In this document: positions 30,801 through 52,874 of the stretch, piece after piece | Layout of the letters: the number at the start of each line of letters is the position of its first letter | Numbering within the stretch: the first letter of the stretch is position 1 | The notes under the pieces: generated by a model | Database searches by the model: none | Seen by the model: the letters and a program-made list of their open reading frames with translations, nothing else | Told to the model about the DNA's origin: nothing | Assembly: GCA_002269645.1 (NCBI GenBank) | Contig: NIVC01002284.1 | Span: 124,001-188,000 of the forward strand | Source of the DNA: Macrostomum lignano | Taxonomy: Eukaryota | DNA: 64,000 bases | Direction: 5' to 3' | Translations under genes and position numbers: made by a program

Positions 30801-33800
30801 AGCCACCATGTCAAACATTAAAGAGCCACCATGTCAAACATAAAAGAGCCACATGTCAAACATTAAAGAGCCACCATGTCAAACATTAAAGAGCCAGCAT
30901 GTCAAACATAAAGAGCCACCATGTCGAACATTATTGAGCCACCATGTCAGACATTAAAGAGCCACCATGCAAACATAAAGAGCCACCATATCAAACATAA
31001 AAGAACTACCATGTCAAACATAAAAGAGCACCATGTCAACATCAAAGAACCACGATATCAAACATTAAAGAGCCACCATGTCAAAAATTAAAGAGCCACC
31101 ATGTCGAAGATAAAGTGCTACCATGTAGAACATAAAAGAGTCACCATGTCGAACATTAAAAAGCCACCACGTCGAACATTAAAGAGCCACCATGTCGAAC
31201 ATAAAAGATCTACCATGTAGAACATAAAAGAGTCACCATGTCGAACATTAAAAAGCCACCATGTCGAACATTAAAGAGCCACCAGGTCGAACATAAAAGA
31301 TCTACCATGTAGAACATAAAAGAGTCACCATGTCAAACATTAAAGAGCCACCATGTCGAACATTAAAGAGCCACCATGTCAAACATTAAAGAGCCACCAT
31401 GTCGAACATAAAAGATCTACCATGTAGAACATAAAACAGTCACCATGTCGAACATTAAAAAGCCACCATGTCGAACATTAAAGAGCCACCATGTCGAACA
31501 TAAAAGATCTACCATGTAGAACATAAAAGAGTCACCATGTCAAACATTAAAGAGCCACCATGTCGAACATTAAAGAGCCACCATGTCAAACATTAAAGAG
31601 CCACCATGTCAAACATTAAAGAGCCAGCATGTCAAACACTAATGAGCCAGCATGTCAAACATAAAAGAGCCACCATGTCGAACATTATTGAGCCACCATG
31701 TCAGACATTAAAGAGCCACCATATCAAACATTAAAGAGCCACAATGTCAAACATAAAAGAGCCACCAAATCAAACATAAAAGAGCCACCATGTCAAACAT
31801 AGAAGAGCCACCATGTCAAACATTAAAGAGCCACAATGTCAAACACAAAAGAGCCACCATTTCAAACCTTAAAGAGCCACCATGTCGAACATTAAAGAGC
31901 CACCATGTCGAACATAAAAGAGCCACCATATCAAACATAAAAGAACTACCATGTCAAACATTAAAGAGCCACCATGTCGAACATTAAAGAGCCACCATGT
32001 CAAACATAAAACAGACACCAATAAAAACATTAAAGAGCCACCATGTCGAACATTAAAGAGCCATCATGTCAAACATAAAACAGCCACTATGTCGAACATT
32101 AAAGAGCCACCATGTCAAACATAAAACAGAGCCACCATTTCGAAAAGTAAAGAGCCACCATGTCGAACATTAAAGAGCCACCATTTCAAACATAAAAATC
32201 TACCATGAAGAACATAAAAGAGTCACCATGTCAAACATTAAAGAGCCACCATGTAAAACATTAAAGAGCCACTATGTCGAACATAAAAGAGGTACCATGT
32301 CAAACATTGAAGAGCCACCATGTCGAACATAAAAGGGCCACCATGTCAAATATTAAAGAGCCACCATGTCAAACATTAAAGAGCCACCATGTCAAACATA
32401 AAAGAGCCACCATGTCAAACATTAAAGAGCCACCATGTCAAACATTAAAGAGCCAGCATGTCAAACATAAAAGAGCCACCATGTCGAACATTATTGAGCC
32501 ACCATGTCAGACATTAAAGAGCCACCATGCCAAACATAAAAGAGCCACCATATCAAACATAAAAGAACTACCATGTCAAACATAAAAGAGCCACCATGTC
32601 AACCATCAAAGAACCACGATATCAAACATTAAAGAGCCACCATGTCAAAAATTAAAGAGCCACCATGTCGAAGATTAAAGTGCTACCATGTCAAACATAG
32701 AAGAGCCACCATGTCAAACATTAAAGAGCCACAATGTCAAACACAAAAGAGCCACCATTTCAAACCTTAAAGAGCCACCATGTCGAACATTAAAGAGCCA
32801 CCATGTCGAAGATTAAAGTGCTACCATGTCAAACATAGAAGAGCCACCATGTCAAACATTAAAGAGCCACAATGTCAAACACAAAATAGCCACCATTTCA
32901 AACCTTAAAGAGCCACCATGTCGAACATTAAAGAGCCACCATGTCGAACATAAAAGAGCCACCATATCAAACATAAAAGAACTACCATGTCAAACATTAA
33001 AGAGCCACCATGTCGAACATTAAAGAGCCACCATGTCAAACATAAAAACAGACCCCAATAAAAACATTAAAGAGCCACCATGTCGAAACATTAAAGAGCC
33101 ACCATGTCAAACATAAAACAGACACCATTAAGAACATTAAAGAGCCACCATGTCGAACATTAAAAAGCCACTATGTCGAACATTAAAGAGCCACCATTTC
33201 AAACATAAAAGATCTACCATGAAGAACATAAAAGAGTCACCATGTCAAACATTAAAGAGCCACCATGTAAAACATTAAAGAGCCACTATGTCGAACATAA
33301 AAGAGGTACCAGGTTAAACATTAAAGAGTCACCATGTCAAACATAAAAGAGCCACCATGTCAAACATTAAAGAGCCACCATGCCAAACATTAAAGAGCCA
33401 CCATGTCAAACATTAAAGAGCCAGCATGTCAAACATAAAAGAGCCACCATGTCGAACATTATTGAGCCACCATGTCAGACATTAAAGAGCCACCATGCCA
33501 AACATAAAAGAGCCACCATATCAAACATAAAAGAACTACCATGTCAAACATTAAAGAGTCACCATGTCGAACATTATTGAGCCACCATGTCGAACATAAA
33601 AGAGCCGCAATGTCAAACATAAAAAAACCACCATGTCGAACATAAAAGATCTACCATGTAGAACATTAAAGAGCCACCATGTCGAACATAAAAGATCTAC
33701 CATGTAGAACATAAAAGAGTCACCATGTCGAACATTAAAAAGCCACCACGTCGAACATTAAAGAGCCACCATGTCGAACATAAAAGATCTACCATGTAGA

Positions 33801-36800
33801 ACATAAAAGAGTCACCATGTCGAACATTAAAAAGCCACCATGTCGAACATTAAAGAGCCACAATGTCAAAAATTAAAGAGCCACCATGTCGAAGATTAAA
33901 GTGCTACCATGTCAAACATAGAAGAGCCACAATGCCAAACACAAAAGAGCCACCATGTCAAACATAGAAGAGACACCATGTCGAACAACTGAGCCACCAT
34001 GTCAAACATAACAGAGACACCATGTCAAACATTAAAGAGCCACCATGTCAAACATTAAAGAACCACGATGTCAATCATTAAAGAGCCACTATGTCAAACA
34101 TATACGTGACTCCATATCAAACATTAAAGAGCTACCATGTCAAACATAGAAGAGCCACCATGTCAAACATAGAAGAGACACCATGTGTCCATGTCAAACA
34201 TAGAAGAGCCACCATGTCAAACATAAAAAGAAGTGTCATGCCAAACAAAATGAAGCCACTATAAAGCTAAGGAAATTATTGCACTAGCTACTTGATGTCT
34301 GGTGGATGCTTGCTATTTAAGGATGGATACTTGCTATCAGGGGGATGCTTGCTATCTGAGTGATGCTTGCTATTGGGGGAGGGATGCTTGCTATCGAAGA
34401 ATGCTTGCTATCTGGGGTAACTTGCTATTGGGGGATGCTTGCTCTTGGGGAGTGGAGGGTACTTGCTATCTGAGAGGGGGTTGCTAGCTATCTATAAGGA
34501 TTCTTTGTATCCAGGGATGCTTGCTATCTGGGGATGGTTGCATGCTGTCTGGGGATGCTTGCATGCTGTCTGGGGATGCTTGCATGCTGTCTGGGGATGC
34601 TTGCTATCTGGGCGATTCTTGCTATCTGGGAGATGCTTGCTATCTGGGGGATGCTTGCATGCTGTCTGGGGATGCTTGCTATCTGGGGATTCTTGCTATC
34701 TGGGGATGCTTGCGTGCTGTCTGGGATGCTTGCTATATCTGGGGGATTCGTGCTATCTGGGAGATGCTTGCATGCTGTCTGGGGATGCTTGCTATCTGGG
34801 GGATGCTTGCTATCTGGAAGATGCTTGCATGCTGTCTGGGGATGCTTGCTATTTGGGGGATTCTTGCTATTTGGGGGATGCTTGCTATCTGGGAGATGCT
34901 TGCATGCTATCTGGGTGATGCTTGCATGCTGTCTGGGGATGTTTTCTTTACAGATGGAATGTCTGTTGTCTTTGTGAAAGCTTTATTTCGCTGTCTTTTT
35001 GTTACTTTTAGAGAACAGATATTCTATTTAGATGTCCCCCATCGGGGGGCGAAGATTGCTAGTCCTATATACTAAAAATGAAATGTGTGTCTCTGTGAGA
35101 TAGATTTCAGAAAAAACGGCTTAACCGATTTTCTTCAAACTTGCACCATTCGATCAGAAATTTTCCTGGGACGGTACATGCATCTTGGCTAAGAAATTGC
35201 TCAATTTTAAAGGGATTAAATATTCGAAAAACATGCTTTTTTGCAAAGGTCAAGCAGCTCTTTCGACCTGAAATGCATTGTAAGAATGCTAGAGAAAAAA
35301 CTGACTGACTGAATTCTGATTCTGACAAAGATTGCATCACAACAAGTTGAAAACAGTGCCGAAGAAATGCACACACGACTTGAATGAAATTGCGTAACCA
35401 TATTGGCAACTTAAATTGAGACTGATTCTGGCTGACTGAGAAATTGATTATGTCATAACTTTTTACTCCAATTGACTTGCTGTAAGAATTGAATTATAAG
35501 GGCCACAATTTATGTTCTCCAATTGAAAAAGATAGCCCAGATGCGAACAGACTGGAATGCTAATGTAGCGACTTGGGTTCGAATCTTAGTAGGGCAAAAA
35601 AGATTTTTTTTTATTAAAACACCTTAAAAACACAAAACTTCTAAACATAAAAGAAGCGCAATGTCAAACATAGAAGAGCCACCATGTCGAACATAAAAGA
35701 GCTAACATATCGAATATTAAAGAGCCACCATGTCAAACCTAAACGAGCCACCATGTCTAATATTTAAGAGGCACCATATAAAACATATAAGTGACTTTAT
35801 GTCAAACATAAAAGAGCCACCATTTCTAACATTAAACAGCCACCATTTCGAAAATTAAAGAGCCACCATGTCGAAAATAAAAGAGTCACTATTTCGAACA
35901 TCAAAGAGCCACTATGTCAAACATTTAGGAGCCACTTTTTCGAACATTAAAGAGCCACCATGTCAAACATAAAAGAGCCAACATGTCAAACATAAAAGAG
36001 CCAACATGTCAAACATAAAGAGCCACCATGTCAAACATTTAAGAGCCACTATGTCAAACATATATGTGACTTTGTGTTAAACATTAAAGAGCCACCATGT
36101 CGAACATAAAAGAGCTAACATATCGAATATTAAAGAGCCACCATGTCAAACCTAAACGAGCCACCATGTCTAATATTTAAGAGGCACCATATAAAACATA
36201 TAAGTGACTTTATGTCAAACATAAAAGAGCCACCATTTCTAACATTAAACAGCCACCATTTCGAAAATTAAAGAGCCACCATGTCAAACATTTAAGAGTC
36301 ACTATTTCGAACATCAAAGAGCCACTATGTCAAACATTTAGGAGCCACTTTTTCGAACATTAAAGAGCCACCATGTCAAACATAAAAGAGCCAACATGTC
36401 AAACATAAAAGAGCCAACATGTCAAACATAAAGAGCCACCATGTCAAACATTTAAGAGCCACCATGTCAAACATATATGTGACTTTGTGTTAAACATTAA
36501 AGAGCCACCATTTCGAACATTAAAGAGCCACCATGTCAAACATGAAAGAGCTATAACATGAAGAATATTAAAGAGCCACCATGTCGAACATAAAAGAGCT
36601 GCCATGTAAAATAACAAAGAGCTACCAAGTTAAACATAAAAGAGCCACCATGTAAAACATTAAAGAGCCACCATGTGAAACATTAAAGAGCCACATTGTC
36701 AAACCTAGAAGAGCCACCATGTCGAACATAACAGAGCTACCATGTCAAACATTAAAGAGCCACCATGTCAAACATTCAAAAGTTACATTGTCAAACATTG

Positions 36801-39800
36801 AAGAGCCACTATGTCAAACATTTAGGAGCCACTTTGTCGAACATTAAAGAGCCAACATGTCAGACATTAAAAAAGCCACCGTATCAAATAAAAAGAGTTA
36901 ACATGTAGAACAAAAAAGAGCCACCATTTCGAACATAAAAGAGCCAACATGTCAAACATAAAGAGCCACCATGTCAAACATTTAAGAGCCACCATGTCAA
37001 ACATATATGTGACTTTATGTCAAACATTAAAGAGCCACCATTTCGGACATAACAGAGCTACCATGTAAAACATTAAAGAGCCACCATGTCAAACATTAAA
37101 GAGCCACCATGTCGAACATAAAAGAGCCACCATGTCAAACCTAAAAGAGCCACCATGTCGAAAATAAAAGAGCCACTATTTCGAACATTAAAGAGCCACC
37201 ATTTCGAACATTAAAGAGCCACCATGTCGACCATAAAAGAGCCACCATGTCAAACATGAAAGAGCTATAACATGAAGAATATTAAAGAGCCACCATGTCG
37301 AACATTAAAGAGCCACCATGTCGAACATTAAAGAGCCACCATGTCGAACATTAAAGAGCCACCATGTCGAACATTTAAGAGCCACCATGTTAAACCTAAA
37401 AGAGCCACCATGTTAAACCTAAAAGAGCCACCATGTTAAACCTAAAAGAGCCACCATGTTAAACCTAAAAGAGCCACCATGTTAAACCTAAAAGAGCCAC
37501 CATGTCAAACCTAAAAGAGCCACCATTTCGAACATATAAGTGACTTTATGTCAAACATTAAAGAGCCACCATGTCAAACATTAAAGAGCCACCATGTAAA
37601 ACAAAAGAGCCACCATTTCGAACATTAAAGAGCCACCATGTCAAACATTTAAGAGCCACCATGTTAAACATAAAAGAGCCACTATGTTGAACATTAAACA
37701 GCCATCATGTCAAACCTAAAAGATCCACAATTTCGAACACTTAAGAGCCACAATGTAGAATATTAAAGAGCTACCATGTCAAACATTTAAGAGCCACCAT
37801 GTCAAACATTTAAGAGCCACCACGTAAAACATTAAAGAGCCACTATTTGAAACATTAAAGAGTCACCATGTCAAACATTTAAGAGCCACCATGTCAAACA
37901 TTTAAGAGCCACTATGTCAAACCTAAAAGAGCCACCATGTCAAACCTAAAAGAGCCACCATGTCGAACATAAAAGAACCACCATGTCAAACCTAAAAGAG
38001 CCACCATGTCGAACATAAAAGAGCTATACCATGAAAAACATTAAAGAGCCACTTTCTCGAACATTAAGGAGCCACCATGTCAAACATTTAAAAGCCACCT
38101 TGTCAAACATTAAATAGCCACTTTGTCGAACATTAAAGAGTCACTGTGTCAAACATAAAAGAGCCACTGTTTCAAACATAAAAGAGCCACCAGGTTAAAC
38201 ATTAAAGAGCCACCATGTCAAACAATAAAGAGGCACCATGTCAAACATAAAAGAGCCACCATGTCTGACATTAAAAAGCCATCGTTTCAAACATAAAACA
38301 GTTGCCATGTAGAACTTAAAACAGCCACCATGTCAAACATAAAATTTACACAATTTCAAACATAAAAGTAAGCGAATTTTAAAGGAGCCACTATAATGCT
38401 AAGGAAATTATCGCACTAGCTACTTATTGTCTGGTGGATGCTTGCTATTTGGGGATGCTATCTATGTAGGGGATGCTTGCTATCTGGCGGATGCTTGCTA
38501 TCTGGGGGATGCTTGCTATCTGGGGGTTGCTTGTAATCTGGAAGATGCCTGCTATCTGGCGGATGCTTGCTATCTGGGGGATGCTTGCTATCTGGGGGAT
38601 GCTTGCTATCTGGGGGATGCTTGCTATCTGGGGGATGCTTGCTATCTGGGGGTTGCTTGTAATCTGGAAGATGCTTGCTATCTGGCGGATGCTTGCTATC
38701 TGGAAGATGCTTGCTATCTGGCGGATGCTTGCTATCTGGGGGATGCTTGCTATCTGGGGGATGCTTGCTATCTGGGGGATGCTTGCTATCTGGGGGTTGC
38801 TTGTAATCTGGAAGATGCTTGCTATCTGGGGGATGCTTGCTGTCTTGGGATGATTTCTTTTTGCTTCCTTTGAGTATTTTGTCTGTTTTTTTTTTGTGAA
38901 GGCCTTTTTTGGCTATCTTTTTGTTACTTGTAGAGAACAGAGGTTCTATACAGATGTCCCCCAACGGGGGGCGAAGATTGCTAGTTGCGTGCTAAAGGCT
39001 TGCAAACCGTAGGCAACAAGCGCACCCTATTGGAGAGACTTCTGCAGTCTCAAGGCTCAGTGGACACGGGACCCATCGATGAATCGGACACCAGCAATCC
39101 ATCGAGAAGGCGAGGGCCCGACGACGGGACGGCGGCGGTCGGCGGCGGCGAGGCGGCAGGAGGGACCCACGGGACTGGCGACCTGGACCGGGACCTGCGG
39201 GAGGCAGAGAAGCAGCTGCGCTTGCTGACAATTCGTCGGGACCAAGCGCGCCTGGAAGCCGAGATCCGTCAGCTGGACCGCCGTGCCGATGAGCCGCAGC
39301 GGCGACCTGCAAATGCCTCAGTGCCCGGTGAGTACTCAAGCCTTGAGGATTTAGTGCTGAGACCTACTGTCAGAGTGCCGGATGAGGTGCAGCAGGCGGG
39401 GCAGCAGCACCCGAATGCGTACCGGGTGCCGGAGTTCATCAGCGCTCGCAAGCGGCTGGCGCTGAACAAGTCAAGTCAAGCCAGCAAGCAGGCCGCCCTG
39501 GACAGCCTCTCGGTTGGCGACTGGATCACCGGAAACGCCAACGCGCTGATGCAGATGCTGAAGGACGGCAGACTCCTCGTCCTCCGTGATGGCGCTATCG
39601 ACATGTCGGAGCTGCTGGAGTACCTGAAGCACACGGCAAAAATTGGCGACCTCCTCGATCTCGGATTCGACCGCGGCCGCGTTTTGCGCTATGATGATGA
39701 GTACAGAGCGCAGCAGGCTGAGGCCGGCGCCTGGGACAGCTCGGTGACCGACCTGGGTCTGGTGGCGGCACACCTGATGGCTCCGAATCTTCAACTGCAG

Positions 39801-42800
39801 GCCGGCTCAGCGGGCAGGTCATCAGCAAAGCGACCGGTCTGCTTCGACTTCAACAAGGTGTCCGGCTGCCAGCGCAACCCGTGTCGTTTCGCACACAGTT
39901 GTAGGCGCTGCGGCCAGGCGCACTCGGAGGCCTCCTTCCACAGAGCGGAGGGCGGCCAGGCGGCAAAAAACTGATGGACGGGGTTCAGCGGCAGGGGTCT
40001 CTTAACATCGAGTCGCCCGCCCCTGCCGCTGCTTCTGTCGAACCCCAAAAGGAGGGCGACTCAAGCGGGACCCTCTCCACCGACTTGCGCCTTGAAGCCT
40101 GGCGCCTCGAGCTGGCCGACACGGAGATGCCAACGAAGCTCGCGCAGTTCGTTTTGAGCGGTGTGAAGGACGGTTTCCGCATCAGGAACGTCAGTAGTCC
40201 GGTGGACTCTGTCGAGCAGGAGAACTACGGCTCCATCGGTCAGCATCGAGTCGAGGTTCAGGCCCAAGTCCGCCGGGAACTGCAAGCTGGAAGATATCGC
40301 GTTAGCGCCAAGCCGACTATTGTGAGCGCGCTGGGCGCCATTCCGAAGTCCGGGGGCGGCATCCGGCTCATCCATGACTGCAGCCAGCCCCAGGGTCGGG
40401 CCGTCAATGATTTGTTTGCTTGCCAGCAGAAGCTTCGGTTTTCTTCGGCGGCTGCCTTTGCCAGGAAGCTGCGCCAGGACATGTACATGTGTAAAGTCGA
40501 CCTGAGCCAGGCCTACCGGTCTTGCGGCATTCACCCGGACGACCACTGCCTCACCGGTCTGAAGTTCACGTTCGAGGGCGAGGCGGAGCCGACCTACATG
40601 GTGGACACCCGGCTGCCGTTCGGAGCGGCAGCATCCGTGAGCAGCTTTTTCCAGATCAGCAACGCCATTCGGTTTATGATGCTCAAGCGCAGGTTCTTCA
40701 ACTTCGAGGTCTACATGGACGACTTCGGCTTCGCGGGTTCGCTGACTGAGTGCTGGCGCTTTTACAACAAGCTGACGCAGCTGCTGCAGAGCCTGGGCCT
40801 GACTGTCAACTGGAAGAAGTGCGTGCAGCCGACGCAGGAGATGTGCTTCCTGGGCATTCAGTTCAACACGCAGTCGGGGCTGATGAGTCTGCCAGAGACG
40901 AAGGTCGAGGAGCTGCAGGCCTGCCTTGACCTCTGCTGCACAAAGCGGCGGATCTCCAAGCACGAGTTGCAGAAGCTGGTGGGCAGGCTCAACTGGGCCT
41001 GTCAGGTGGTCTGCAACGGCCGGCCGTTTCTGCGAGACCTGATCGACCGCGTCAACGACTTGTCGAGCCCGAAGGATCGGCTGTTGGTGGATGGCCAGTT
41101 CAAGAGCGTCCTGAGCTGGTGGAAAGTTGCTCTGCGGCAGCAGCCAGGTCGCGAGCTCTGGCCTGCTGCCAGGAGGCCGGTTGCCATGGAGACGGACGCC
41201 TGTCTGGTGGGGGCAGCGGCTGTTCTGAGAGATCCGGCTGGTTCTGACTGGTGCTATCTGCAGTGGGAAGTCGACGCTGACAGCGAGTTCAGCGATTGCT
41301 GCATCAACTACAAGGAGGCTGCCGCGGTGCTGCTGGCGTTGCTGCACTGGCGCCGTCAACTGCACAACTGCTGGATCGCTGTCTACTGCGACAATGCTGC
41401 AGCCTGCGCGATTATCAACAAGGGGTCATCCAGGGAGCCCCGGCTGTTGCGGCTGCTGCAGACTGTTGCTCTGCTGTGCCTAAAGCAGAACATTGTGGTC
41501 ACCGCCCACCATGTGCCCGGCCGGTTTCAGCTGTTTGCCGACGCCGCCTCCCGCCTGCATTGCCGGCAGGAGTTGCTGAATTTTCTGTTGCGAGCCTATG
41601 CAACCGCCTCTGTTTGCCCGCATGAATTTGCGGGACATGCGCTTAGCCCTGCCTCCGCCGCCTTTCTTTTTTTACAGGTCGCCTCCCTGGGTCTCTCGAC
41701 GCTGCCGCCGACAAACTGCTCCAGCAGGCCTACGCATCATCGTCCAAGAGGTCGCTGTCATCTGCTGTCCGCTCCTGGCAACGCTTCTGCCGAGAGCGGC
41801 GGCTCGACCCACTCGGCTGTCGGGCGGAGGATCTCGCAAACTACGTCGGCCAGCTCGTGGACGGCCGGCTCAGCTCCTTCGGCAGCGTCCGCGTGCATAT
41901 CAGCGCTCTGTCCGCCAGTTTCCGACTGGCGGGAGTGCCGGACCTGACCAGGCACCCGCTGCTGCACCTGGTTCTGCGGGGAGCCAAGCGCGAGCTGGGG
42001 TCGGAGCCGAGTCGCAAGCTGCCGGTGTCGCCAGACCTTTTGTCGAGACTGCGGCTGCAAGTCGACAGCTCGAATCCTGTGCAGGCGGCCTGCTGGGCTG
42101 CGGTCATGTGCGCTTGGTGGGGGATGTTCAGGAAGTCCAGCCTGCTGCCGCGAGGGCGCGCCGATCCGCCAGTGCTGCGACTGAGTTCGCTGGCAAGATG
42201 CCCCGAAGGCCTGCTTCTGACGTCCAGCTTCGGGAAGACCAACCAGTACGGTCGGACGCATCGCGTGCTGCTGCCAGAGTTGACTTCGGGCCACCCGCTC
42301 TGTCCAGTGGCGGCACTGCGAGGCCACCTGCGCTGCAACCGGCTGAAGCAGCGGCAGCAGGGCCTGTTTTCATTCAGCAGTGGATCGTCCGGTCACGCAT
42401 CTCTGACGTCCCGGAGGCTCGATGTACAGTTCAGGTCGTGGCTCGGCAAGGCGGGAGTGCCGGCGGCCGGGTTTTCTGTGCATAGCCTGCGGCGAGGCGC
42501 CGCCACCTGGGCGGCCCGGTGCGGCCTGTCAGTGCGGGAGATCCAGTGCGTGGGTGACTGGCGCAGCGACGCAGTGAGCGTCTACCTGTCCCGCGATGAC
42601 ACGGCTCTGCGTGCGGCGCGCAAGCTTGCTGTTGCGGCGCTTGACCAAACCTGACGTGTTTCGCGGTTTTTTTGGAAGAAAGGTTTTGGGCTCCTTTTTT
42701 GTTTGCTTGTCCGCTTTTGCTTGCCTCTGCTTGGTCTGCTTTTGCTCTAGTCTGTTTTCTTGCTGCTTTTGGTGTTGGGGGGAGTGCATGGCAGCCTTCC

Positions 42801-45800
42801 CTGTCCTCCTCGCTGTTCCTGCGCCATTTGCTGCTCTTGAGCTTGCTGCGTTCGTCTTCTGGGGTGGGCAGTGGGCACTAATGGCTAGTTTGCGCGGGCT
42901 GCGCTAACTGGCGTTTGTGTACGCTGCCCACCCCTGCCCCTCCCCCGCGGCTTTCCCCCACCCCCGGTGTTTGGGGGGGGGGTTGCGTGGCGGGGGGTTT
43001 TATACCCCGCGGTTGGCTCTTTGGCCTCGCTGTCGCATTGCAATTGAAAAAAAAAATTTTTTTTCGTATCCTGTCACTCTTTTAATCCTGCTTTGATCCG
43101 TTCTAACTGTTGTCAATAATGCTTTAATATTTTCTCGTAATCGGTCTGAAATATACGGGGGGGAGTGCATGGCAGCCTTCCCTGTCCTCCTCGCTGTTCC
43201 TGCGCCATTTGCTGCTCTTGAGCTTGCTGCGTTCGTCTTCTGGGGTGGGCAGTGGGCACTAACCTAACTATATTAATATATTGGTCACTAGTCGACTAAG
43301 CTTACCGGGCACGGTTTGAAGGAAAGCTGTGAAACCTCGTTTCTGGTGGACAACGATAGGAAAAATTTGGACAGCCATAGGCAGCACACTGTTTTCGCGA
43401 TTTTGCGGAAGGCATACTTCACTGCAGCAAAACCAAAAACACCCAAATTCTTTGTGAAAAGACAATGCTGCTGCAAGTCATTCCATTCTATGGTCTAATT
43501 CCATTTGAAGTAAGCTATTGGCTTCATTTCTCGCCCGCTTTTTCTTGAATTGTCTATGGCCTAAGCACTCGAGACCTGTCATATTAAGTCATGTTGAAGT
43601 CATGTTAGAAAAAAATCCATCGTGTTTTTATTCCTTTACTGTTTGTCGAATATGCTGCGTTATTCTTCAATACGCGAAGACGAAATTAGTGGATTGAGCT
43701 CAGATGAGCTCGATTTCATCACGCATCTCGATCCTCGGGACCATGTCGACAGAATCGGTCAATGGACAGGGCTGACGGATGAGCAAGAGAGGCTAATTGA
43801 TGAGGAACTACGCAATCGTACGCCGGAAGATCACGTTGGAAACCTGTTTCGTGAATTGACCGAAGAAGAAGAAGCTGGCCTACATCATGTGGAGCAAGAA
43901 AGTAAACGGAAGTCGACGGTTAAGCAAACTGAATTGCATATTCGCAAACTAAAAGATCCTATCTACGCCTGTTCTTCGTTCAGTTAAAAACAGCTGATGG
44001 AAGCCATATGCTGTAAGTACACTGCCGTATTTTCGCGCATCTGTGCACTGGTATTTATTAGAGAAGCGAAATCTGAAGCTGATTGGCAACGATGCGTTCT
44101 TATCGTTTGATCGAACGTACAAGGCTATGTTGGTCAAATCGCTTCAGCAAAAAAGGCTGTAGGCAGCGGTCCAAAGTACTGTCCAATTGACGACGAAGAC
44201 TTCAACCGCCTACGCCTCTATTTCGATCGTTCGACGCCAACTCGACTGCAATTTGAAGTTCTGTTCAAGATTGTTTATGGCTTTGGTTTTCGCGGCAGGG
44301 AGTGGCTGCGAGAGTTGACTAAGGCCGATATGATAATTTACGATCGTGACGGTGTTCGCTATGTGGACCTGCTGAAGACATCTATCGAAAAAACCGTGTC
44401 TGATAGTAATCCGTCGACATCTAAGAGCATTATCTTAGCCGAGACACCGGATTATCCAGGCTCATGTCCTGTACGGGCGATTGAGTTGTATCTGTCGGTC
44501 ATTCCAGAAGATGTTGCCTGTCTCTGGCCCAAGCCTTTGAATCAAGCCGACAATGACGGTATATGGTACCACAAGACCCTGGTGCTTGGCAAGAATTGGT
44601 TGAACGAGTTTATGAAAAAAACTGTGCGATCAGGCTGGTCTGAGTTGCCGTTCCCACACAAATCATTGCATTCGAGCGTCGGTAGTGTCAAATCTTATCG
44701 AAGATGAAGTCACTAGATCAGACATTCAAGTCGTAACCGGCCACAAAAGAATCGAGAGTGTGGACCTCTACAACAAGAGAATGAAGTTCTCGAAGAAGGT
44801 TGATCTATCAAACACTATTAGTCGTCGACTGGCTGTTCCAGGCCGGTCTGAAACAAGCTTTACCGCATCGAACAGGTCGGTTGTATCGACTGGAGACGTA
44901 ATCGAGAGATCGGCTACCGACTGCTCGACTAGCTCTGTTGTGTCTACTAAGAACTCATTCACGAGATCTGCTACCAACTACTCTATTGCAGTCGGTAGTT
45001 CCCAGAGTGCAAGCTCACTGTTTGGAAATTGCAAGTTTGAAAATTGTACGTTTAACTTTAATCAATCAAACTAAGGTCAGGAGGTATACCGCGTGAGAAA
45101 TCTAAAAACTGTCAATGGACTATATCTCTAATTTTTATCTCATGTTAATGTTAATATCTCATGTTAATGCTAATATACCTTTTTGCAATCTAGTTTGCCA
45201 AAACCGCAATCAATTTTGCCCACTAAGAGAATTTACTTGTATATTTCTAATATCTTGGCTTAACCTGCCCATTCATTGCCATAGTTTGAACCATAGACAA
45301 ATCCTTGAAACTGCATTCAATTTTGCCAAAACTGCGATCAAGTTTGCCCATAGTAAAAAGCAAGCACCGCAGACAAACATAGAAGCGCAAGAATGGCTCA
45401 GTGCGGATCTTATAACAAGATTTCTACGAAGGACCGGCAGCGCTTAATTCAAGCATTTCAGAACGGAGAGGACTGGCAAGATTTCGGTAGACTTTTGGGC
45501 ATCGCACGAAGAACCGTGACCTATATCGTTGGGCGATTTATTGCAAGTGGTCGCATTGATCCTCTTCCTCGCGGAGGTGCCAAACGGAAGTCACTCAGCG
45601 ATGCTATGGTGGAGAGAATATGTAGCTATGTCCAAAGTAATCATCGAATTAATTGTGCATGCAGTGTGTCAGCTCATTCCCTGTTAGTTTTAGTTATTCG
45701 TTCTCAAATAAATTCGTTTCGGGCAAACTTGATCGCAGTTTTGGCAAAATTGAATGCAGTTTCAAGGATTTGTCTATGGTTCAAACTATGGCACTGAATG

Positions 45801-48059
45801 GGCAGGCTGAGCCAAGATATTAGAAATATACAAGTAAATTCTCTCCGTGGGCAAAATTGATTGCAGTTTTGGCAAACTAGATTGCAAAAAGGTATATTAG
45901 CTCAAAATATACACAGTTTCTTTGTGCCCACTTGGGGCCATAGACAACTTTTGCTGGCGGGCAGACATCGCTTTCACCCTCGTTTCGGCAGGCTTAGGAC
46001 TGCTACAATGTAACGATATATACCGATTTTTTAGCGGCTTCAGCTTACGCAATTGCTGCCGAAAAAAATCGGTATATGTCATTATTGTACCCTTTTGACT
46101 TCCCTTGTCTATGGCCCAGACATAGTGCGGATGCTGAGTATGAAATGCGATTGTTGCCGGAATGCGCTTTGAAAGGGTTGTAGAGATAATCAATCGTCTA
46201 TGGCAAATTTAGTTGCTCTCTAAATGAAAGGGTTGTAGAGATAATTAATCGTTTATGGCAAATTTAAAGGACAGTGAAGACAGCTAGCCTGGCTGCCATG
46301 AGTTAATTCTCAAGTTGATTTTGAGCTTGAATTAATTCTCCTATTCGGAGTGCAAATAGGAAAAGTAGCTATGATTCGCTACGCAAACATTCCTGGCGGA
46401 GAAATATGTGGACTCTCCACGGACGAGTTGGCTTTTGTCACCCGAGAGTCGAGCACGCGCTACGTTCTGGAGATGGACAACCTGGATGCGTCGTCCAGTT
46501 CCAACGGGCTGCCTGAGCTAGGTAGCGAAGATCTGGAAATTGACGACGATGCGGAATCCACCATCGAAAGTGTGACAACTGGGTCTGATAGAGGCGAGCT
46601 GATGAAAGCACCCGAGGGCGGCCAAGACCTGCCGAGAAGCCTCTGTGGTGGTCAGTTCCACAACTGCACATTCAACTTTTACGGAAAGTAAAACAATTGA
46701 TTCGATCGGTTTGTTCTTAAGAACTTTTTGTGACTATGAAACACTTTCGCCGTGTTGCTATTGTTGTTCCTTGTTTTGATAGCCAAATACATTCGTCTGA
46801 AATCCGGCAACAATCGAAAAAAGCCGACAAACAATTAAATTGTTACCGCAAGTATGAATGCCGGAAACCATAGACAAAAGGGAACAATATTATTTGCATG
46901 AAAACTTGTGTGCGATTTGTGTTGTATTTTTCTGAGTTGCTTGAGTCAAATGGAAATGGAATCGAAGATGAGAAGCTTTCTTATGTTGCAGGCTGGTTGC
47001 TACGCAGACATCTGACTTCTTGTTTGGATGCTCCATGCGGCGAATGCACGTCAGAATTGCAGACTGCTGATAATACCTGCAGACTCTTCATCAATTTGAA
47101 GAGCATAATAATTCAGGTGGTTATGTGCTACACATTTGAGTTAATAGTCTATGGCTACTTATGTTTCTTCACCGGATTAGTAGTTTGTACGTATATCTAT
47201 TTCTACGCAGTTAATTTCATAAAAATCGCAGATTGAGCATTCTGGGTAAGTTCTGTGCAGACACTGATGAGCACAAAGCTCAGGTCAGAGACATCACACA
47301 GACACTGATGAGCACAAAGCTCAGGTCAGAGACATCACACAGACACTGATGAGCACAAAGCTCAGGTCAGAGACATCACACAGACACTGATGAGCACAAA
47401 GCTCAGGTCAGAGGCATCACACAGACACTGATGAGCACACAGCTCAAGTCAAAGACATCACACAGACACTGATGAGCACACAGCTCAGGTCAAGAGACAT
47501 CACACAGACACTGATGAGCACACAGCTCATGTCAGAGACATCACACAGACACTGATGAGCACACAGCTCAAGTCAAAGACATCACACAGACACTGATGAG
47601 CACAGTTTAGGCTAAGGCCACCGGCCACACAGCCCCAGCCAGAGCCGTCCCACTCACCCCAGTGTGCCCGTCAGCCAGGTCAACTCGCCAATCCCGGCCG
47701 CAGAGGGTGATCGGCTTTCGCCTAAATCCGCGGCGCCGAATGCCGCTGAGCAGCTCTTCGAGCTCCCACTTGGCCGGCTCCGGTTCAACGCCCAGGGACG
47801 CCAGCAGTCGCAGGTCCGAAAGCTCTACGATGACGCCGGCGCTGCAGAGTCCGGTACCGACCAGGATGACGGCCAGGTAGTCGGGCCAGTCCCAAAGACC
47901 CACCGGGGCCCGGGACCGCTCGGCCAGGGTGGCCACATCGCAGCGCCAGTACGGCAGCTGACGGCGCCGCTCCTCCGCCACTGCGGCCGCCGTGGCGCCG
48001 CCTGCGGCTGCGGCTTCCGCCACGCGAATCCGATTTAGCAGAAACTGGTCCACGTTCAT
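18868..48059 (-). CDS. Profilin-like protein, 187 aa; exon 1 48059-47658, exon 2 19029-18868, intron 28,628 bp
   Basis: Exon 1 WPDYLAVILVGTGLCSAGVI...ITLCGRDWRVDLADG is the profilin N-half; exon 2 GFTAARSRSKLIIGW...CNLAVCNLADFF is the C-half; GTGAGT donor and CAG acceptor both phase 0; same minisatellite at both intron ends. Confidence 0.75.
19086..19371. mobile_element. hAT-type MITE, 286 bp
   Basis: 15-bp TIR CAGGTGCGTCGCCAT / ATGGCGACGCCCCTG (14/15 match); 8-bp TSD ACAGAGAC. Confidence 0.85.
19372..19633. repeat. 42-bp minisatellite (left half of an interrupted array)
   Basis: Unit GACACTGCTGAGCACACAGCTCAGGTCAAGAGGCATCACACA. Confidence 0.9.
20690..22310. repeat. 23-bp Helitron-internal satellite (unit 1)
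   Basis: (CCACCATGTCAAACATTAAAGAG)n. Confidence 0.95.
22378..23130. repeat. 18-bp Helitron-internal minisatellite (also 34305-34940 and 38430-38850)
   Basis: (GGGGGATGCTTGCTATCT)n. Confidence 0.95.
23846..25110. repeat. 21-bp minisatellite inside Helitron unit 2
   Basis: (GAGATTTCAAGGCTTACTGGGGGAATT-like)n, 7-aa periodicity in the ORF track. Confidence 0.9.
26000..34245. repeat. 23-bp satellite, 8.2 kb, with kb-scale higher-order repeats (unit 3)
   Basis: Identical ORFs recur at 4135-4136 bp spacing (27654/31790, 28139/32274, 28691/32826). Confidence 0.95.
35640..38345. repeat. 23-bp satellite (unit 4), more diverged monomers
   Basis: Direct reading. Confidence 0.9.
39974..41947 (+). CDS. 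pol: Reverse transcriptase / RNase H of the Ngaro element
   Basis: IRLIHDCS, KVDLSQAY, RLPFG, YMDDF, FLGI; RH motifs METDAC, YKEAAAV, YCDN, ADAASR; uninterrupted 657 aa. Confidence 0.93.
   Translation: MDGVQRQGSLNIESPAPAAASVEPQKEGDSSGTLSTDLRLEAWRLELADTEMPTKLAQFVLSGVKDGFRIRNVSSPVDSVEQENYGSIGQHRVEVQAQVRRELQAGRYRVSAKPTIVSALGAIPKSGGGIRLIHDCSQPQGRAVNDLFACQQKLRFSSAAAFARKLRQDMYMCKVDLSQAYRSCGIHPDDHCLTGLKFTFEGEAEPTYMVDTRLPFGAAASVSSFFQISNAIRFMMLKRRFFNFEVYMDDFGFAGSLTECWRFYNKLTQLLQSLGLTVNWKKCVQPTQEMCFLGIQFNTQSGLMSLPETKVEELQACLDLCCTKRRISKHELQKLVGRLNWACQVVCNGRPFLRDLIDRVNDLSSPKDRLLVDGQFKSVLSWWKVALRQQPGRELWPAARRPVAMETDACLVGAAAVLRDPAGSDWCYLQWEVDADSEFSDCCINYKEAAAVLLALLHWRRQLHNCWIAVYCDNAAACAIINKGSSREPRLLRLLQTVALLCLKQNIVVTAHHVPGRFQLFADAASRLHCRQELLNFLLRAYATASVCPHEFAGHALSPASAAFLFLQVASLGLSTLPPTNCSSRPTHHRPRGRCHLLSAPGNASAESGGSTHSAVGRRISQTTSASSWTAGSAPSAASACISALCPPVSDWRECRT
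41678..42654 (+). CDS. Tyrosine recombinase of the Ngaro element
   Basis: Frame open from 41647; AYASSSKR..., GMFRKSSL, KTNQ, HSLRRGAATW, GDWRSDAVSVYL (R-K-HxxR-W-Y). Confidence 0.9.
43306..43415 (-). CDS. THAP domain first exon
   Basis: MPSAKSRKQCAAYGCPNFSYRCPPETRFHSFPSNRA followed by a GTAAGC donor; not in the ORF track. Confidence 0.7.
43652..45074 (+). pseudogene. Crypton-type tyrosine recombinase (DUF3504/ZMYM-related), several frameshifts; candidate element 43550-46116
   Basis: LFFVQLKTADG, FGFRGREWLREL, CPVRAIELYL, LGKNWL, HTNHCIRAS, VTGHKRIESVDLY; FENCTFNF tail. Confidence 0.8.
45169..45901 (+). mobile_element. Internally deleted Tc1/IS630-like element
   Basis: About 180-bp TIRs (TA-CCTTTTTGCAATCTAGTTTGCC...); internal ORF 45393+ with a paired-type HTH (LLGIARRTV..IVGRF...PLPRGG); no DDE domain. 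Confidence 0.8.
46350..46691 (+). other. Acidic ORF ending GGQFHNCTFNFYGK, a Crypton-like C-terminal tail fragment
   Basis: Same NCTFNF tail motif as the Crypton at 45040-45074. Confidence 0.4.
46930..47130 (+). pseudogene. C-terminal remnant of a P-like transposase
   Basis: LSYVAGWLLRR...CGECTSEL...FINLKS resembles the P/THAP9 C-terminal L-Y-I-A-G-Y..CxxC pattern; abuts the right TIR. Confidence 0.55.
47258..47605. repeat. 41-bp minisatellite (right half of the interrupted array)
   Basis: Continues in register from 19633 after the TSD. Confidence 0.9.
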
Positions 48060-48079
48060 TGCTGCGGAATTGGGTTCCG

Positions 48080-48083
48080 TCTG

Positions 48084-48116
<33 letters not shown>

Positions 48117-48123
48117 GCCTGCC

Positions 48124-48190
<67 letters not shown>

Positions 48191-48219
48191 GTGTCTGTCT
48201 GTCTATCTGTCTGTCTGTC
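48080..48219. repeat. (GTCT)n microsatellite upstream of the profilin ATG
   Basis: Direct reading. Confidence 0.95.
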
Positions 48220-49230
48220 TTGCAGCAGCTCAAGAAGTTCAGCTCTTACCTTTCCGGCTGCTCAAACGCGTGCTGAAGCTCCACAACTTTGTTAAAACAA
48301 AGTTAAAACAACTTTGATGACAACAAAAACCCAAGGCAAGAAGATGCTAGTATACGAGTTATAGCACAGAGTGTTAGCTAACGCATCTGTTTTATATACA
48401 AACTTAACGCTCTGGTTGGACTGAAAACATGGCAGCGAACTGTACCGAGAGCTGCAGCTCTGTACTTGCAGGTGAGGCGGGGCAGGGGGTGCCAAGATGA
48501 AGAAGCGAGTCTGGACTGAGCTGAGCCAGCTGCTCTTTTAGAGACCTCTTCAGCTGCTTGAAAAGAAGGCTTGCTATGCACTTGGCTTTTCTATTTATAA
48601 AGGCTTCTAAATAATAAAGCGGGGACCGTGGGGGCAGAGAGTTGCGCCAGAGTCAGAAATAGTTGCCATGACACCCACAGGGCAGTCCGTGAGCGCAGCC
48701 AAGAGAGATAAGAGTTGCGTCTTTGCTTGACTTTTTTGCGCAGTCGGACCGCCACTTTCTGTGTGTTTGGCCGGTGAAGTTGAGACGCAAGCGAAGGAAG
48801 TGGCGCAGCAAGGCTACTTTCAAGTCTATTTAACGGCACGAACTCTGTCCGTGTTACTTGTAGTAGTGCGTATGTGCATGAAAGCTATCAAATTTGATAG
48901 AGAGTATTTGTTTGAACAAGCGGAGCGCTTATTTCTTTAGTGCTCAACTTTGCCCGAGCGATCCGCGGCTTCCCCCACCTGAGATGCATGTAAAAATTGG
49001 CCTTCAATCACGTTTGCATGGTTAGGTAGTTCAGTGACTGCTCAGGTGAGCGGGTCAGTTGCTGGTGTGATTGGCTTTTTCAATAAGAGAAAATATATCG
49101 AAAAAGCATGCATTATTATGCTATTTTTGTCCTATACCTGTGATATTATAAACATAAAATTTATATCTAGGTTACTGTTTTACTAAACATTATTGGACTC
49201 AAGTATTGCGACTAAAATCTCATATGAGTA

Positions 49231-49365
49231 AAATCCCGTATGACTCAAATTCCATATGACTCAAATTCCATATGACTCAAATTCCATATGACTCAAATTC
49301 CATATGACTCAAATTCCATATGACTCAAATTCCATATGACTCAAATTCCATATGACTCAAATCCC
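49231..49365. repeat. 16-bp tandem repeat, about 8 copies
   Basis: (TGACTCAAATTCCATA)n. Confidence 0.9.
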
Positions 49366-50579
49366 ATATCTAGTCGAGCAGCAATGAGAAGACGTATTAC
49401 GAAGGAGGCAGATAAGAGGCAGAGAAGAGGGCCCACTGTGACGTTCTTCAGGTATTCGAGAGTGACATGTTCGAGTGACAATTTTGACAGTGAAATATTT
49501 GACATATTCGAGAGTGACATTTTCAACAGATGTCGATTTCAGTCGGGAGGATAGTTCTCAATCACAGCGACCTCAACAGCCGCTTATAAGCGTGTGCGAG
49601 CAAGTTGCTCAGGTGCGATGGATTAAAATGACGGGCTAAACTAGTCTGTGGCCCAGCCCACTGAAGTGAAGTGAGCTAAAGTGAAGCTGTGCTCAGTCCA
49701 GCGAGCTCAAATTCCAGCACTCGAGCTCAGCTGCAAAATTCTACAACAGAAATCGATCGACAACATGCCCAGCTGCTTCCAGGGAATCTGGAGTCGCATC
49801 CACAGGCGCTTCATGCCCAGGTGGTACCGCGCAGAGGAGAAGCGAAAGGACGCGGTTTGGGAAAAGTTTCTGCGGCTGCAAATCGAAGTTCAGAGAAGAA
49901 TTAAAGAGCAGCTTGAGTGGCAGATGCTTTGAGATAGCCTTAAGCCCGTTCGTGGACGGCGACGTCCCCGATGTGGAGGCCGAGGAGTTTGAGCGGCGGC
50001 GGATGGAGACAGCCTTATGGAACGAGCTCCCATAGATCGTATATTCCCTAGATGGGCCGCTCACTATTCAAACTGCTGTGACTAAGCCAAGCCAAGTACC
50101 CTCATATCACCCCATAGACAATAAATATGCCTCCCGTCGTACTAAAGGGTCTAAGGGGTCTTTTGCGGTCTAAAGGGAGCAAGCAATGGTATATTCTTCC
50201 GGCGCTCGCGTGTTATTCCATTATCATGCACCCCGACTGCAGATGAGTGCATTGACTAGCGTTTCCCTATAGGCTAGCAGTCTATGGTCAAGAAAGACAA
50301 TAACACGCAGTCTCGTAAGAAGTCTCTTTGGCCATAGACAATTTGAACAGAACAGTCATTTAAGCGAGCATCAGTAAGAACTGTTTGCTGCGAGATATAA
50401 AGCTTGGGCAAATGCTACTTGAGTATGCAGAACTAAATTAATTAAAAGCCAGACATGTCTACATCTACTAAACTTCTACCGCCGTTACTTAACTACAACA
50501 CTCTGCCGACGGATGAGATTAGTGGCGTCAGTGATGTAGAGTTAGACGTAATTACGAGACTTTCGTCGAACGGCGATGA

Positions 50580-52009
50580 ATGTCGGGAGCAATTATCGAC
50601 GACTTCATGAGCTTAATCGCAAATGACACCGAACAACTTGATAATTTAGAGGAGTTCGAAGAACAACTAACTGCTTGTGGCGATCTGAGTGCTGAGTTGC
50701 TCCAGTTAGATGGCATCGAGATCGAAGGACTGCCCGCGAGCACCAGGCGCCAAATGGAAGAGAACGGTAAACGTTTTTTCGAATTTTGTATGAATAGAAG
50801 CCTACGCACCGACTATGCCTCGCTGGATGACAGAACGCTTAATGAATGCCTTCGAATATTTTATTTCCAATTAAAGACAAGAGATGGAAAATATTACGCT
50901 CCTGCATCTCTCGGATGTATAAGAGCTGGAATTCAACGGTATCTGAATATACTGTGCAAGCGTCCGACGAATTTATTGGCAAAGCATACCGATTTTGATG
51001 GAAGCAATCGCATGCTCTGCTTTAAGATCAGGCAGTTTATTGAAGCTGGGCAGCAGAGTCGCCACTATGACGCAATCGAGGAAGGTGACATGCTTAAGCT
51101 TAGACAATACTTTACTAGAGAGGATGCTGAACACCTACAGGATGAGATGTTGTTTACGGTTCTGTATGAACTGGGTGAGCGTGGCCAGGAACACCTACGC
51201 GTCCTGATGGAACGGAACTGTTTGCGGCGAGGTGTAGATGCTTATGGTCGCGAGTATTTGGCCATGCCGTCCCTACCATCCAAGAACCGGACAGCTGACG
51301 TTGACCATCCGGAAAAAGTATTGACGCGAAGCATGCTCGTATTTACAACACGGAGGTCATTGATGTCTACGAAAGTCATTTACCATCGGCCGCTCAATCT
51401 TATTTGCCAAAGCCCCTTAAAGGACTGCCTGGTCAACAGTTCCGGTTCTCTGAGAAATGTGCACGGGGATTTCGATTCTTACAAGATTTCATGAAGACCC
51501 TGAGTGCTAAAGCTGGATTGAGTAAAAATTACACTAATCACTGTATCCGGTAAGTGTTGACCTCTGTTCAAGAATGATAAATGTTTTACAATATTCGTTC
51601 AATAATTATTTATTCTATAACTTTCAGTGTCACTAGAGTATGCGACCTTGAAAGCCGTGGCCATTCGTTGCAAAGCATTATGATGGTAACGGGACACAAA
51701 TGCGAAAAGACCGTGAAGCGATACTTGAGCACGCGCCGCGATCGGAGTTTGTTTAAGAGTTCTGAGGCCGTACACGATGCATTGCATCGTGACATTCCAA
51801 GCGCTGGTGAACAGGCCTCTGGTTCCGGCTTGTGTGCTGCTGAAAAATTTGATAAACCTACCGCCTGCACATCCGTGTTGACTGTCGCCAGCAGCAGTGT
51901 CGCTACGGTATCGTACAACAAACCTGTTCAAATCCAAGCTAGCCCGGCAAAAAAAATGCGTGTCAAAATCGATGGCGGTAATAATTTTATAAGTATTGAA
52001 TTTGAGTAA
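50580..52009 (+). CDS. Second Crypton tyrosine recombinase, near intact (one frameshift near 51315; intron 51550-51627); candidate element 50330-52588
   Basis: FYFQLKTRDGKYY, LGERGQE, YTNHCIR / VT, VTGHKCEKTVKRY; phase-2 GT-AG intron. Confidence 0.82.
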
Positions 52010-52874
52010 CGACTTTTTTGACAAGGATTTTAAACAATTTGTTGCTCGAAAAGGCTATTAACAAAAACAACAAACCAAATTACGCCGGTTCGAAGCCTCA
52101 ACTTACCAAAAAAAACTTGCCTGACCTGATCAAACTTACTTGAAGTACTTAAAGTAAAAGTCAAAATAAACTGCAATTTAAAAAAACTTTTTTGTAATGA
52201 ATACAGTTCCTATTTCCTATTTTGTACGAGCGTATTTATATTGCAATAGATCGTTTTTTAGCATTTATATCATTATACGCTCGTATATTCCAACTGACAT
52301 TGCGAGCAAGTCAGAAAGTTTCTATCCAGTTTCTTGACAAGAAAAATAAAATTAGGAAGAGTTATATCAATATAGCCATTAAAAATGCCTATAATGCAGA
52401 AGTAGTCGTTCGCTTACCTTGCCTTTTGGAGGTGGTTAGTTAGCATGGGACGCGCTAAAAAATACATGTAAGAAAATTATTTTGTTTGCAGCTCTGCACA
52501 CTCGTCTCTTCTAATTAGCTGCGCTCTCGAGGCGCGAACGTGTCGAAGCCCTGTATTGGTAGGCTGGCCTTTGGGCCATAGACAATTTTTTCTAGCACCA
52601 ATCAAGTTTTGACTGCAAGCCGGGAGAGGAATCGATTTTAATACGACGTAAAGTTGTCTATGGCTTTCGTCGTTCGTTTTTAAAGCACACAGAGCAGGAA
52701 AACGAGCTTATTACCAAGTTAGGCCCGGTCATAGACTAAGGAAATCATTTATTTGATGCGAAAGCAATTTATCTGGCCGGGCTCGAGTACTTTAGAATTT
52801 TTGTTCGAACGAAATAACGTGTAAGAAACGAAGAACTGCACTTCTGTCATTAAGTTCTCGAAAAACAAACATTG

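Follow-up and report, generated by a model that had tools for sequence, protein, structure and literature searches.

A short motif at the ends of stacked CryptonA-type elements and its putative role as a subterminal recombinase-binding repeat

The window, a 64,000-nucleotide stretch of contig NIVC01002284.1, contains two pseudogenes of Crypton tyrosine recombinases (YRs), with copies of one short motif around both of them. The question raised by this locus is what the motif does there. A preliminary description had taken two pairs of direct copies as the brackets of att-like cassettes, and the motif itself as the recombination site of an integron-like array. We found that the region from 43.4 to 53.4 kb, in eukaryotic DNA rich in repeats, is a fossil pile of tyrosine-recombinase transposons of CryptonA type (DUF3504), composed of two full-length frameshifted elements and at least two internally deleted derivatives, and it probably also holds non-coding derivatives. 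As for the motif, we judge it about evenly balanced whether it is a putative subterminal repeat bound by the recombinase, in elements that were stacked through insertion at each other's terminal core and that form no integron-like array.

The coding parts of the pile are as follows.

43652–45074, plus strand: Crypton YR pseudogene 1 (gene 1, Crypton 1), with several frameshifts and an N-terminal deletion; HCIR...GHK...Y kept
50456–52009, plus strand: Crypton YR pseudogene 2 (gene 2, Crypton 2), with two frameshifts and an intron at 51550–51627 after HCIR
46350–46691, plus strand: open reading frame (ORF) of an internally deleted Crypton derivative, keeping only the N-terminus (EICGLSTDELAFVT) and the C-terminus (NCTFNF)
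about 53366–52875, minus strand: degenerate Crypton derivative, NTKKKAD(stop)IVGVFKHW ... KKMRIEICGESNKVTITFD(stop), with the tail read at 52934–52878

Read through their frameshifts, genes 1 and 2 each give about 470–490 residues, with 27% mutual identity. Both frames are broken, and the catalytic signature TNHCIR, VTGHK and RY/LY is kept in both conceptual translations. The matches to Phage_integrase (E 4e-6 and 27.0 bits against a cut-off of 27.1 for gene 1; E 3e-4 for gene 2), to DUF3504 (E 4e-5, gene 1) and to QRICH1 (E 7e-4 to 1.5e-3, gene 2) were all below the Pfam cut-offs. The database homologues of the two genes, found at E 1e-88 and 3e-96, carry PF12012 (DUF3504), PF25561 and PF00589, and 695 clusters came up at E <= 1e-3 in a full-library search. 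Inside either Crypton unit only the recombinase ORF has a family match, and no reverse transcriptase, DDE transposase or long terminal repeats belonging to either Crypton were found. Judged by their sequences, both genes are CryptonA-type (DUF3504) tyrosine recombinases in the sense of Kojima and Jurka (PMC3212892), which bears out the Crypton identity proposed for them at the outset. The intron of gene 2 is of GT-AG type and immediately follows the catalytic HCIR. In three homologues of other samples (P0001, P0002 and P0004) the ORF stops exactly at the intron point, so the intron position is conserved in this transposon family.

Through tblastn of the window, Crypton coding sequence was found at three plus-strand regions only. 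The deleted derivative at 46350 was described correctly from the start. The tail reported at 52875 is also real, but it lies on the minus strand, within the degenerate derivative listed above; this derivative gave no tblastn match at E <= 1e-3 and is therefore only probable. Self-BLAST of the window revealed no second copy of either Crypton. A scan of metagenomes for relatives gave two distant loci, and viral and prokaryotic collections gave none.

The motif is the 12-mer GGCCATAGACAA (reverse complement TTGTCTATGGCC) with the 8-mer core CCATAGAC; its plus orientation is that of GGCCATAGACAA. Exact 12-mers are located at 43550–43561 (minus), 45936–45947 (plus), 46105–46116 (minus), 50330–50341 (plus) and 52574–52585 (plus), and copies with one mismatch at 52654–52665 (minus), 14786, 14823 and 23503. 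These nine copies compare with 0.30 expected in the window, and nine were reached in none of 100 shuffles. The 8-mer was found 20 times in the whole window against 1.38 expected, and 13 of the 20 fall inside 43468–52665, a stretch of 9.2 kb or 14% of the window (binomial P = 3e-7), with the other seven outside it. Chance origin of the copies was rejected through the shuffles and the binomial and Poisson tests. The motif coordinates given in the preliminary description were all exact, as was its perfect 15-bp pair, GGCCATAGACAATTT, identical at 50330–50344 and 52574–52588. Regarding the inverted copies reported nearby, that at 45936 is exact and that at 52654 has one mismatch, but the one at 50280 matches the 8-mer core only (CAGTCTATGGTC).

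The motif copies and candidate boundaries of the pile are listed below, together with one isolated Crypton end elsewhere in the window. L-numbers are loci on contigs that encode homologues; these contigs were fetched and their flanks read for the motif.

43373–43384, plus strand: degenerate motif copy AGCCATAGGCAG, a weak match (9 of 12), possibly the 3' motif of an upstream element cut by insertion of a DIRS element
43462–43467, plus strand: ACAATG, candidate crossover core and 5' boundary of Crypton 1, proposed from the likeness to L009 and L013
43484–43495, minus strand: variant motif CATTCTATGGTC in the 5' region of Crypton 1, read by eye
43533–43538, plus strand: GCCCGC(T)TTT box, 11 bp upstream of the motif
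43550–43561, minus strand: motif TTGTCTATGGCC, 90 bp upstream of the Crypton 1 ATG
45936–45947, plus strand: motif GGCCATAGACAA, first copy past the Crypton 1 stop, with a GCGGGC box behind it at 45957
46005–46088, plus strand: ACAATG (46005–46010) opening an 84-nt hairpin, candidate junction of the Crypton 1 3' end and the derivative 5' end
46105–46116, minus strand: motif TTGTCTATGGCC, leading a set of three direct copies ahead of the derivative ORF
46194–46205, minus strand: motif copy TCGTCTATGGCA, in a 55-bp tandem duplication with a variant at 46249–46260
46866–46877, plus strand: motif copy AACCATAGACAA, first past the derivative stop
47145–47156, minus strand: motif copy TAGTCTATGGCT, in a repeat shared, inverted, with 19731–19742
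50110–50121, plus strand: motif copy CCCCATAGACAA, followed by CAATG at 50184–50188
50278–50289, minus strand: motif copy CAGTCTATGGTC, 176 bp upstream of the Crypton 2 ATG
50330–50344, plus strand: motif GGCCATAGACAATTT, 112 bp upstream of the Crypton 2 ATG
52574–52588, plus strand: motif GGCCATAGACAATTT, first copy past the Crypton 2 stop
52654–52665, minus strand: motif TTGTCTATGGCT, on the minus strand the first copy past the stop of the minus-strand derivative
19731–19831, plus strand: solo Crypton end with motif, GCCCGC box and GGCAGGCTTAG...CTACAAT, homologous to 45936–46010 and to L018 1300–1385

Alignment of all 20 copies gave a longer consensus, roughly A.TWGTCTATGGCC.AA, and CTTnGGCCATAGACAAyTT is common to the strongest copies. 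In flank alignments the motif was the sole non-coding similarity between the window elements: the flanks of Crypton 1 and of the derivative, aligned locally, had the motif alone in common, and in a five-way alignment of 5' regions only TTGTCTATGGCC lined up. The motif is common to two recombinases that are just 27% identical. Rfam scanning of the window gave no RNA gene match, which leaves no 5S, snRNA or tRNA gene as a conserved target. Some likeness to the 5' end of 5S, U6 and the dinoflagellate spliced leader was too weak and too inconsistent across copies, and was dropped.

Each element end has several motif copies in both orientations, and their positions follow a rule. Copies reading TTGTCTATGG lie about 100–265 bp upstream of the ATG, as at 43550 (with the variant at 43484), at 46105, 46194 and 46249, at 50278, at L001 36 and at L012 59, 109 and 149; about 10 of the 11 5' copies read in this way. 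The first copy past the stop reads in the GGCCATAGAC-type direction (the GGCCATAGACAA orientation) in all six elements, namely at 45936 (Crypton 1), 46866 (derivative), 52574 (Crypton 2), 52665–52654 (minus-strand derivative), L018 1300 and L001 1672.

The motif is present in the non-coding flanks of three relatives from public contigs. In L001 (39% identity to gene 2), copies reading GTCTATGG at 36 and 1678 stand on either side of the ORF at 70–1557, and the 3' copy forms CCATAGTCTATGG. L012 (44% identity) has TGTCTATGGC, TGTTAATGGC and TGTCTATGGT at 59, 109 and 149, with the ATG at 251, and variants such as GGCCATTAAC at both contig ends. L018 (52% identity to gene 1) has GGCCATAGACA 360 bp past its stop, then GCGGGCA...GCAGGC...CACAAT, in the same order as at 45936–46010 and 19731–19831 in the window. 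Together the three loci contain five exact 8-mers in 5.2 kb against 0.16 expected (P = 7e-7), compared with one in the 19 other loci (47.7 kb) against 1.5 expected. Since it flanks related Cryptons in three unrelated public contigs, we consider the motif to be Crypton-specific. The GCCCGC(T)TTT box beside the motif (43533, 45957 and 19786) was also found in the flanks of L013, L016, L017, L018 and L019; it runs through the whole clade and is far commoner in the AT-rich flanks than composition predicts. The arrangement of motif and box at 45936 is conserved in L018 and at 19731–19831, and the block common to the three runs about 60–90 bp past the plus copy and ends in ACAAT. The 3' blocks of the putative upstream and middle elements (43373 and 50110) gave no alignment with it.

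In more distant relatives the element boundaries can be read directly, because the same element occurs in several contexts. The boundaries (slashes) are ...ACAATG/TAGAG...GATAACAATG/ in L008–L011 and ...CAATG/TAGGA...CACACAATG/ in L013–L015, so that a direct repeat of 5–6 bp, (A)CAATG, stands at both boundaries in L008–L015. These relatives have a subterminal repeat of their own, CATTGTCTGGAC, in both orientations, and in L008, L013 and L017 a long hairpin follows directly after the core (z −12 to −15). In L008, a marine relative, a second and different Crypton begins right after the terminal ACAATG of the first (1690–2121). In L010 the last nine bases of the element are joined to its own first bases (1–9), which indicates a tandem or circular junction.

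Comparable sequences occur at the candidate boundaries of the window. Crypton 1 has ACAATG on either side, at 43462 and 46005, and CAATG stands at 50184, 267 bp before the gene 2 ATG; their role as terminal repeats is proposed by analogy with L008–L015 and from the hairpin at 46005. The first of them is 66 bp from the GCCCGC box and 185 bp from the gene 1 ATG, with spacing as in L013. The hairpin at 46005–46088 (folding free energy −20.8, z −6.45) lies 57 bp beyond the motif copy at 45936–45947 and resembles the terminal hairpins of L008, L013 and L017. By this analogy, the arrangement suggests head-to-tail units at about 43468–46010, 46011–46890, 46891–50188 and 50189 to about 52600, followed tail-to-tail by a minus-strand unit. 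Stacking of elements, also part of the preliminary description, is seen as adjacent units in the window, as in L008.

The subterminal-repeat reading may be put together as follows. One to three TTGTCTATGG copies lie between the 5' end and the ATG and a GGCCATAGACAA copy past the stop, with extra copies reading either way. By analogy with arm-type and subterminal sites, the motif would be the binding site of the element's recombinase, and its binding would bring the two ends together. Strand exchange would most likely take place at the separate 5–6 bp (A)CAATG, some tens of bp to the outside of the motif, in line with the Goodwin model, with a terminal hairpin following the core in some elements. 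Because the core would lie at the element's own end, new copies would integrate preferentially at resident ends, and head-to-tail arrays would be the result. Later insertions, a Tc1-like element inside and a DIRS element at the left edge, would then have broken the pile. Recombinase binding, the crossover position in the window and the order of insertion are parts that we infer.

Several observations count against this reading. For each of these families a single copy from this genome was compared, and the boundaries in the window are accordingly candidates only. Taken over all motif copies, the downstream sequence showed no enrichment of CAATG, and the three examples 68–86 bp from the motif were chosen post hoc; a fixed-distance CAATG is therefore kept only as an analogy-based possibility. 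The candidate 5' ends at 43468 and 50189 have no convincing hairpin (z +0.8 and −2.2). The orientation rule is violated upstream of gene 2 by the plus copy at 50330, and L021 and L022 show arrangements other than the positional rule. L002 and L003, the nearest relatives of gene 2 (48–49% identity), are without the motif in the sequence examined. In L022 (41% identity) no motif was found either, in a contig too short to reach the element ends. The motif is also present in each inverted repeat of the unrelated Tc1-like element, which a Crypton-specific site does not explain.

It is rather doubtful that the crossover lies in the motif itself, as an att-like core inside GTCTATGGCC, with cassettes bracketed by direct repeats and excised as circles. 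Direct pairs do exist (43550 with 46105, and the perfect 15-mer at 50330 and 52574), and in L001 GTCTATGGTA is directly oriented on both sides of the ORF. But the two window pairs were chosen from at least 13 copies in the Crypton stretch, with seven more elsewhere in the window. That many copies within 9 kb allow numerous pairings, and the two chosen are oppositely oriented relative to two genes that are both on the plus strand. The extended identity of 50330 and 52574 is the general consensus, found also at 43548 and 45931, and hence is not evidence of a duplicated target. A reading of the paired repeats as brackets is not supported, and each end has several copies. A crossover in the motif would agree with its TATGG, the terminal repeat of most CryptonS elements (PMC3212892), and with the palindrome GTCTA-TGGCCA-TAGAC at 23497–23512, which resembles a complete core-type site. 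It would also agree with the L008 family, where the crossover CAATG is the outer edge of the terminal copy of the element's own repeat (GATAACAATG, the reverse complement of CATTGTTATC); by analogy, the boundary could fall right after AGACAAT of the plus copy. Known Crypton cores are just 4–6 bp, and the sequence conserved with L018 and with 19731–19831 extends about 60–90 bp past the plus copy, to ACAAT. The boundaries of relatives fall at the 5–6 bp CAATG core, and ACAATG with a hairpin is present at 46005–46088. The motif stands as a feature of Crypton ends in a stack of elements, as first proposed; a part as subterminal recognition repeat is more likely for it than one as the crossover.

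It appears improbable to us that the motif serves a host factor (as a promoter, an insulator or some other regulatory site) and is carried by several transposon families of this genome because it aids their expression, with no role in recombination. In Crypton 1, L001 and L012 it stands at a fairly constant distance, about 100 bp, before the ATG, which would suit such a site, as would the copy in each inverted repeat of the Tc1-like element and the copies beside minisatellites, far from Crypton coding sequence. Against this, copies are also found consistently past the stop, in opposite orientation, in six of six elements. The DIRS element and the satellites have none, and the motif accompanies Crypton relatives in other samples together with the GCCCGC box and end-type hairpins. 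A text search for a published description of the motif returned primers only. If it were a host-factor site, the finding would be that of an ordinary transposon graveyard.

The inverted pairs 45936/46105, 46868/47147, 50112/50280 and 52574/52654 can hardly be terminal inverted repeats of an independent family of small miniature inverted-repeat transposable elements (MITEs), because, despite four plus-to-minus pairs with a compatible 12-bp inverted terminal match and a spacing of 168–169 bp in two of them (279 and 80 bp in the others), the segments between the motifs are non-homologous and differ in length in an alignment of the four intervals, no target-site duplication was seen at the pair edges, and the first 60–70 bp inside 45936/46105 are homologous to the 3' Crypton flank of L018.

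The designation as an integron-like array does not hold. The pile shares with integrons a tyrosine recombinase and arrays of units separated by short, imperfectly palindromic sites, but it lacks a fixed integrase-attI platform and cargo cassettes without promoters, every unit is a Crypton or its remnant, and the host is eukaryotic.

Compared with the arm-type or subterminal sites of lambda Int, Tn916, Ac/Ds, En/Spm and P elements, the subterminal-repeat reading has in common several short copies near both ends, in both orientations and apart from the cleavage point. This likeness is one of arrangement only; the protein families are unrelated save for the YR fold of lambda Int and Tn916 Int. 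Cryptons have terminal direct repeats of 4–6 bp as recombination substrates, and for animal Cryptons no terminal repeats were found (PMC3212892). In the active Crypton CryptonF-1_cRei the ends are CACCG and the targets CAYCG (bioRxiv 10.1101/2022.05.23.493040), and the terminal repeats of fungal CryptonA are reported as variable or poorly conserved (Kojima and Jurka 2011, PMC3212892; Glomhopper 2026, PMC13465315). With CryptonF, CryptonS and the Goodwin model our elements share (A)CAATG at both boundaries in L008–L015, ACAATG at the candidate boundaries of the window, and TATGG within the motif. They differ in belonging to another protein group with no GCR1_C domain and in the longer subterminal motif, which is not described for CryptonF or CryptonS, and the crossover in the window is a predicted one. 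With CryptonA they share the single tyrosine recombinase gene with DUF3504, Phage_integrase and QRICH1-like similarity, the lack of reverse transcriptase, DDE transposase and long terminal repeats, and the internally deleted non-autonomous derivatives. Unlike the published animal CryptonA and CryptonI elements, which are reported to be without terminal repeats, here a motif of 12–19 bp recurs at both ends, is common to families only 27% identical, and is accompanied by terminal hairpins and head-to-tail stacking that are present in relatives as well.

Other elements of the window touch the pile or carry motif copies.

45169–45901, no strand assigned: nested Tc1/mariner-type MITE of the inverted repeat-direct repeat kind, with 181-bp inverted repeats (97% identical) and a paired-like helix-turn-helix ORF
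38985–43262: DIRS-like retrotransposon with a reverse transcriptase/RNaseH ORF at 39974–41947, its own tyrosine recombinase ORF at 41857–42654, and 62% G+C
23497–23512, no strand assigned: perfect 16-bp palindrome GTCTATGGCCATAGAC (GTCTA-TGGCCA-TAGAC), two cores back to back
14786–14834, plus strand: two motif copies GGCCATAGACTA, in the first units of a 41-bp minisatellite
15107–15118: motif copy closing the array of the same 41-bp minisatellite

The Tc1-like MITE sits in the 3' region of Crypton 1, outside the Crypton system, as a later insertion; the motif copy in each of its inverted repeats is TTTGTCTATGGTTCA (45291 and 45772). The DIRS-like element has identical 105-bp direct repeats at 42777–42881 and 43158–43262, and a 99% identical fragment of its end, at 19870–20048, adjoins the solo Crypton end. 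The palindrome at 23497–23512 is the one site in the window with an inverted motif pair at a short fixed spacer, the layout known from loxP, FRT and dif, where two inverted arms surround an overlap of 6–8 bp, and it lies within a longer imperfect palindrome between two satellite arrays. The other copies in the window are single, with the opposite side not conserved, and L001 has CCATAGTCTATGG. The palindrome could be a complete recombination site or a product of recombination between inverted copies. The 41-bp minisatellite occurs three times (14786–15118, 19372–19762 and 47124–47604). Its first two units at 14786–14834 carry GGCCATAGACTAAT and later ones GGTCAGAGACATCA, and, relative to the array, the unique flank of the 19-kb copy stands inverted in the 47-kb copy. 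The inverted flank could reflect a recombinase-mediated inversion or non-autonomous Crypton derivatives.

The ORF at 46898–47236 is without a Pfam hit, and its motif KLSYVAGWLL...C..C is reminiscent of the C-termini of P-element/THAP9-type transposases. The window is very repeat-rich, with many mini- and microsatellite arrays. About 12 kb consist of a 23-bp satellite, AAACATTAAAGAGCCACCATGTC, with strong strand skew (20686–22236, 25998–34186 and 35643–38344) and with 18-bp and 30-bp arrays interleaved, which gives the window the look of heterochromatin or of a graveyard of transposons. The window is eukaryotic, and long ankyrin-repeat ORFs and a Mab-21-like ORF at 7377–9622 and 10198–11595 are its sole apparent host-type coding sequence.

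Cryptons are the least understood class of eukaryotic DNA transposons, and animal-type CryptonA gave rise to the vertebrate ZMYM2/3/4, QRICH1 and KCTD1 domains. We know of no terminal structure or recognition site defined for animal-type CryptonA. We put forward tentatively, as a possibility somewhat short of an even chance, that the motif CTTnGGCCATAGACAAyTT with the GCCCGC box, the hairpin and the CAATG core forms an unrecognised end architecture of CryptonA (DUF3504), conserved below 30% protein identity and across organisms, which makes elements target each other's ends and so gives head-to-tail arrays. As the literature has animal Cryptons without terminal repeats and poorly conserved ones in fungal CryptonA, this architecture would be modestly new. 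A conserved motif at both ends, with the candidate CAATG core and hairpins, would supply a substrate for the first biochemistry of a CryptonA recombinase and would let annotators delimit CryptonA elements in genomes, and it could hint at the DNA once recognised by the domesticated DUF3504 proteins.

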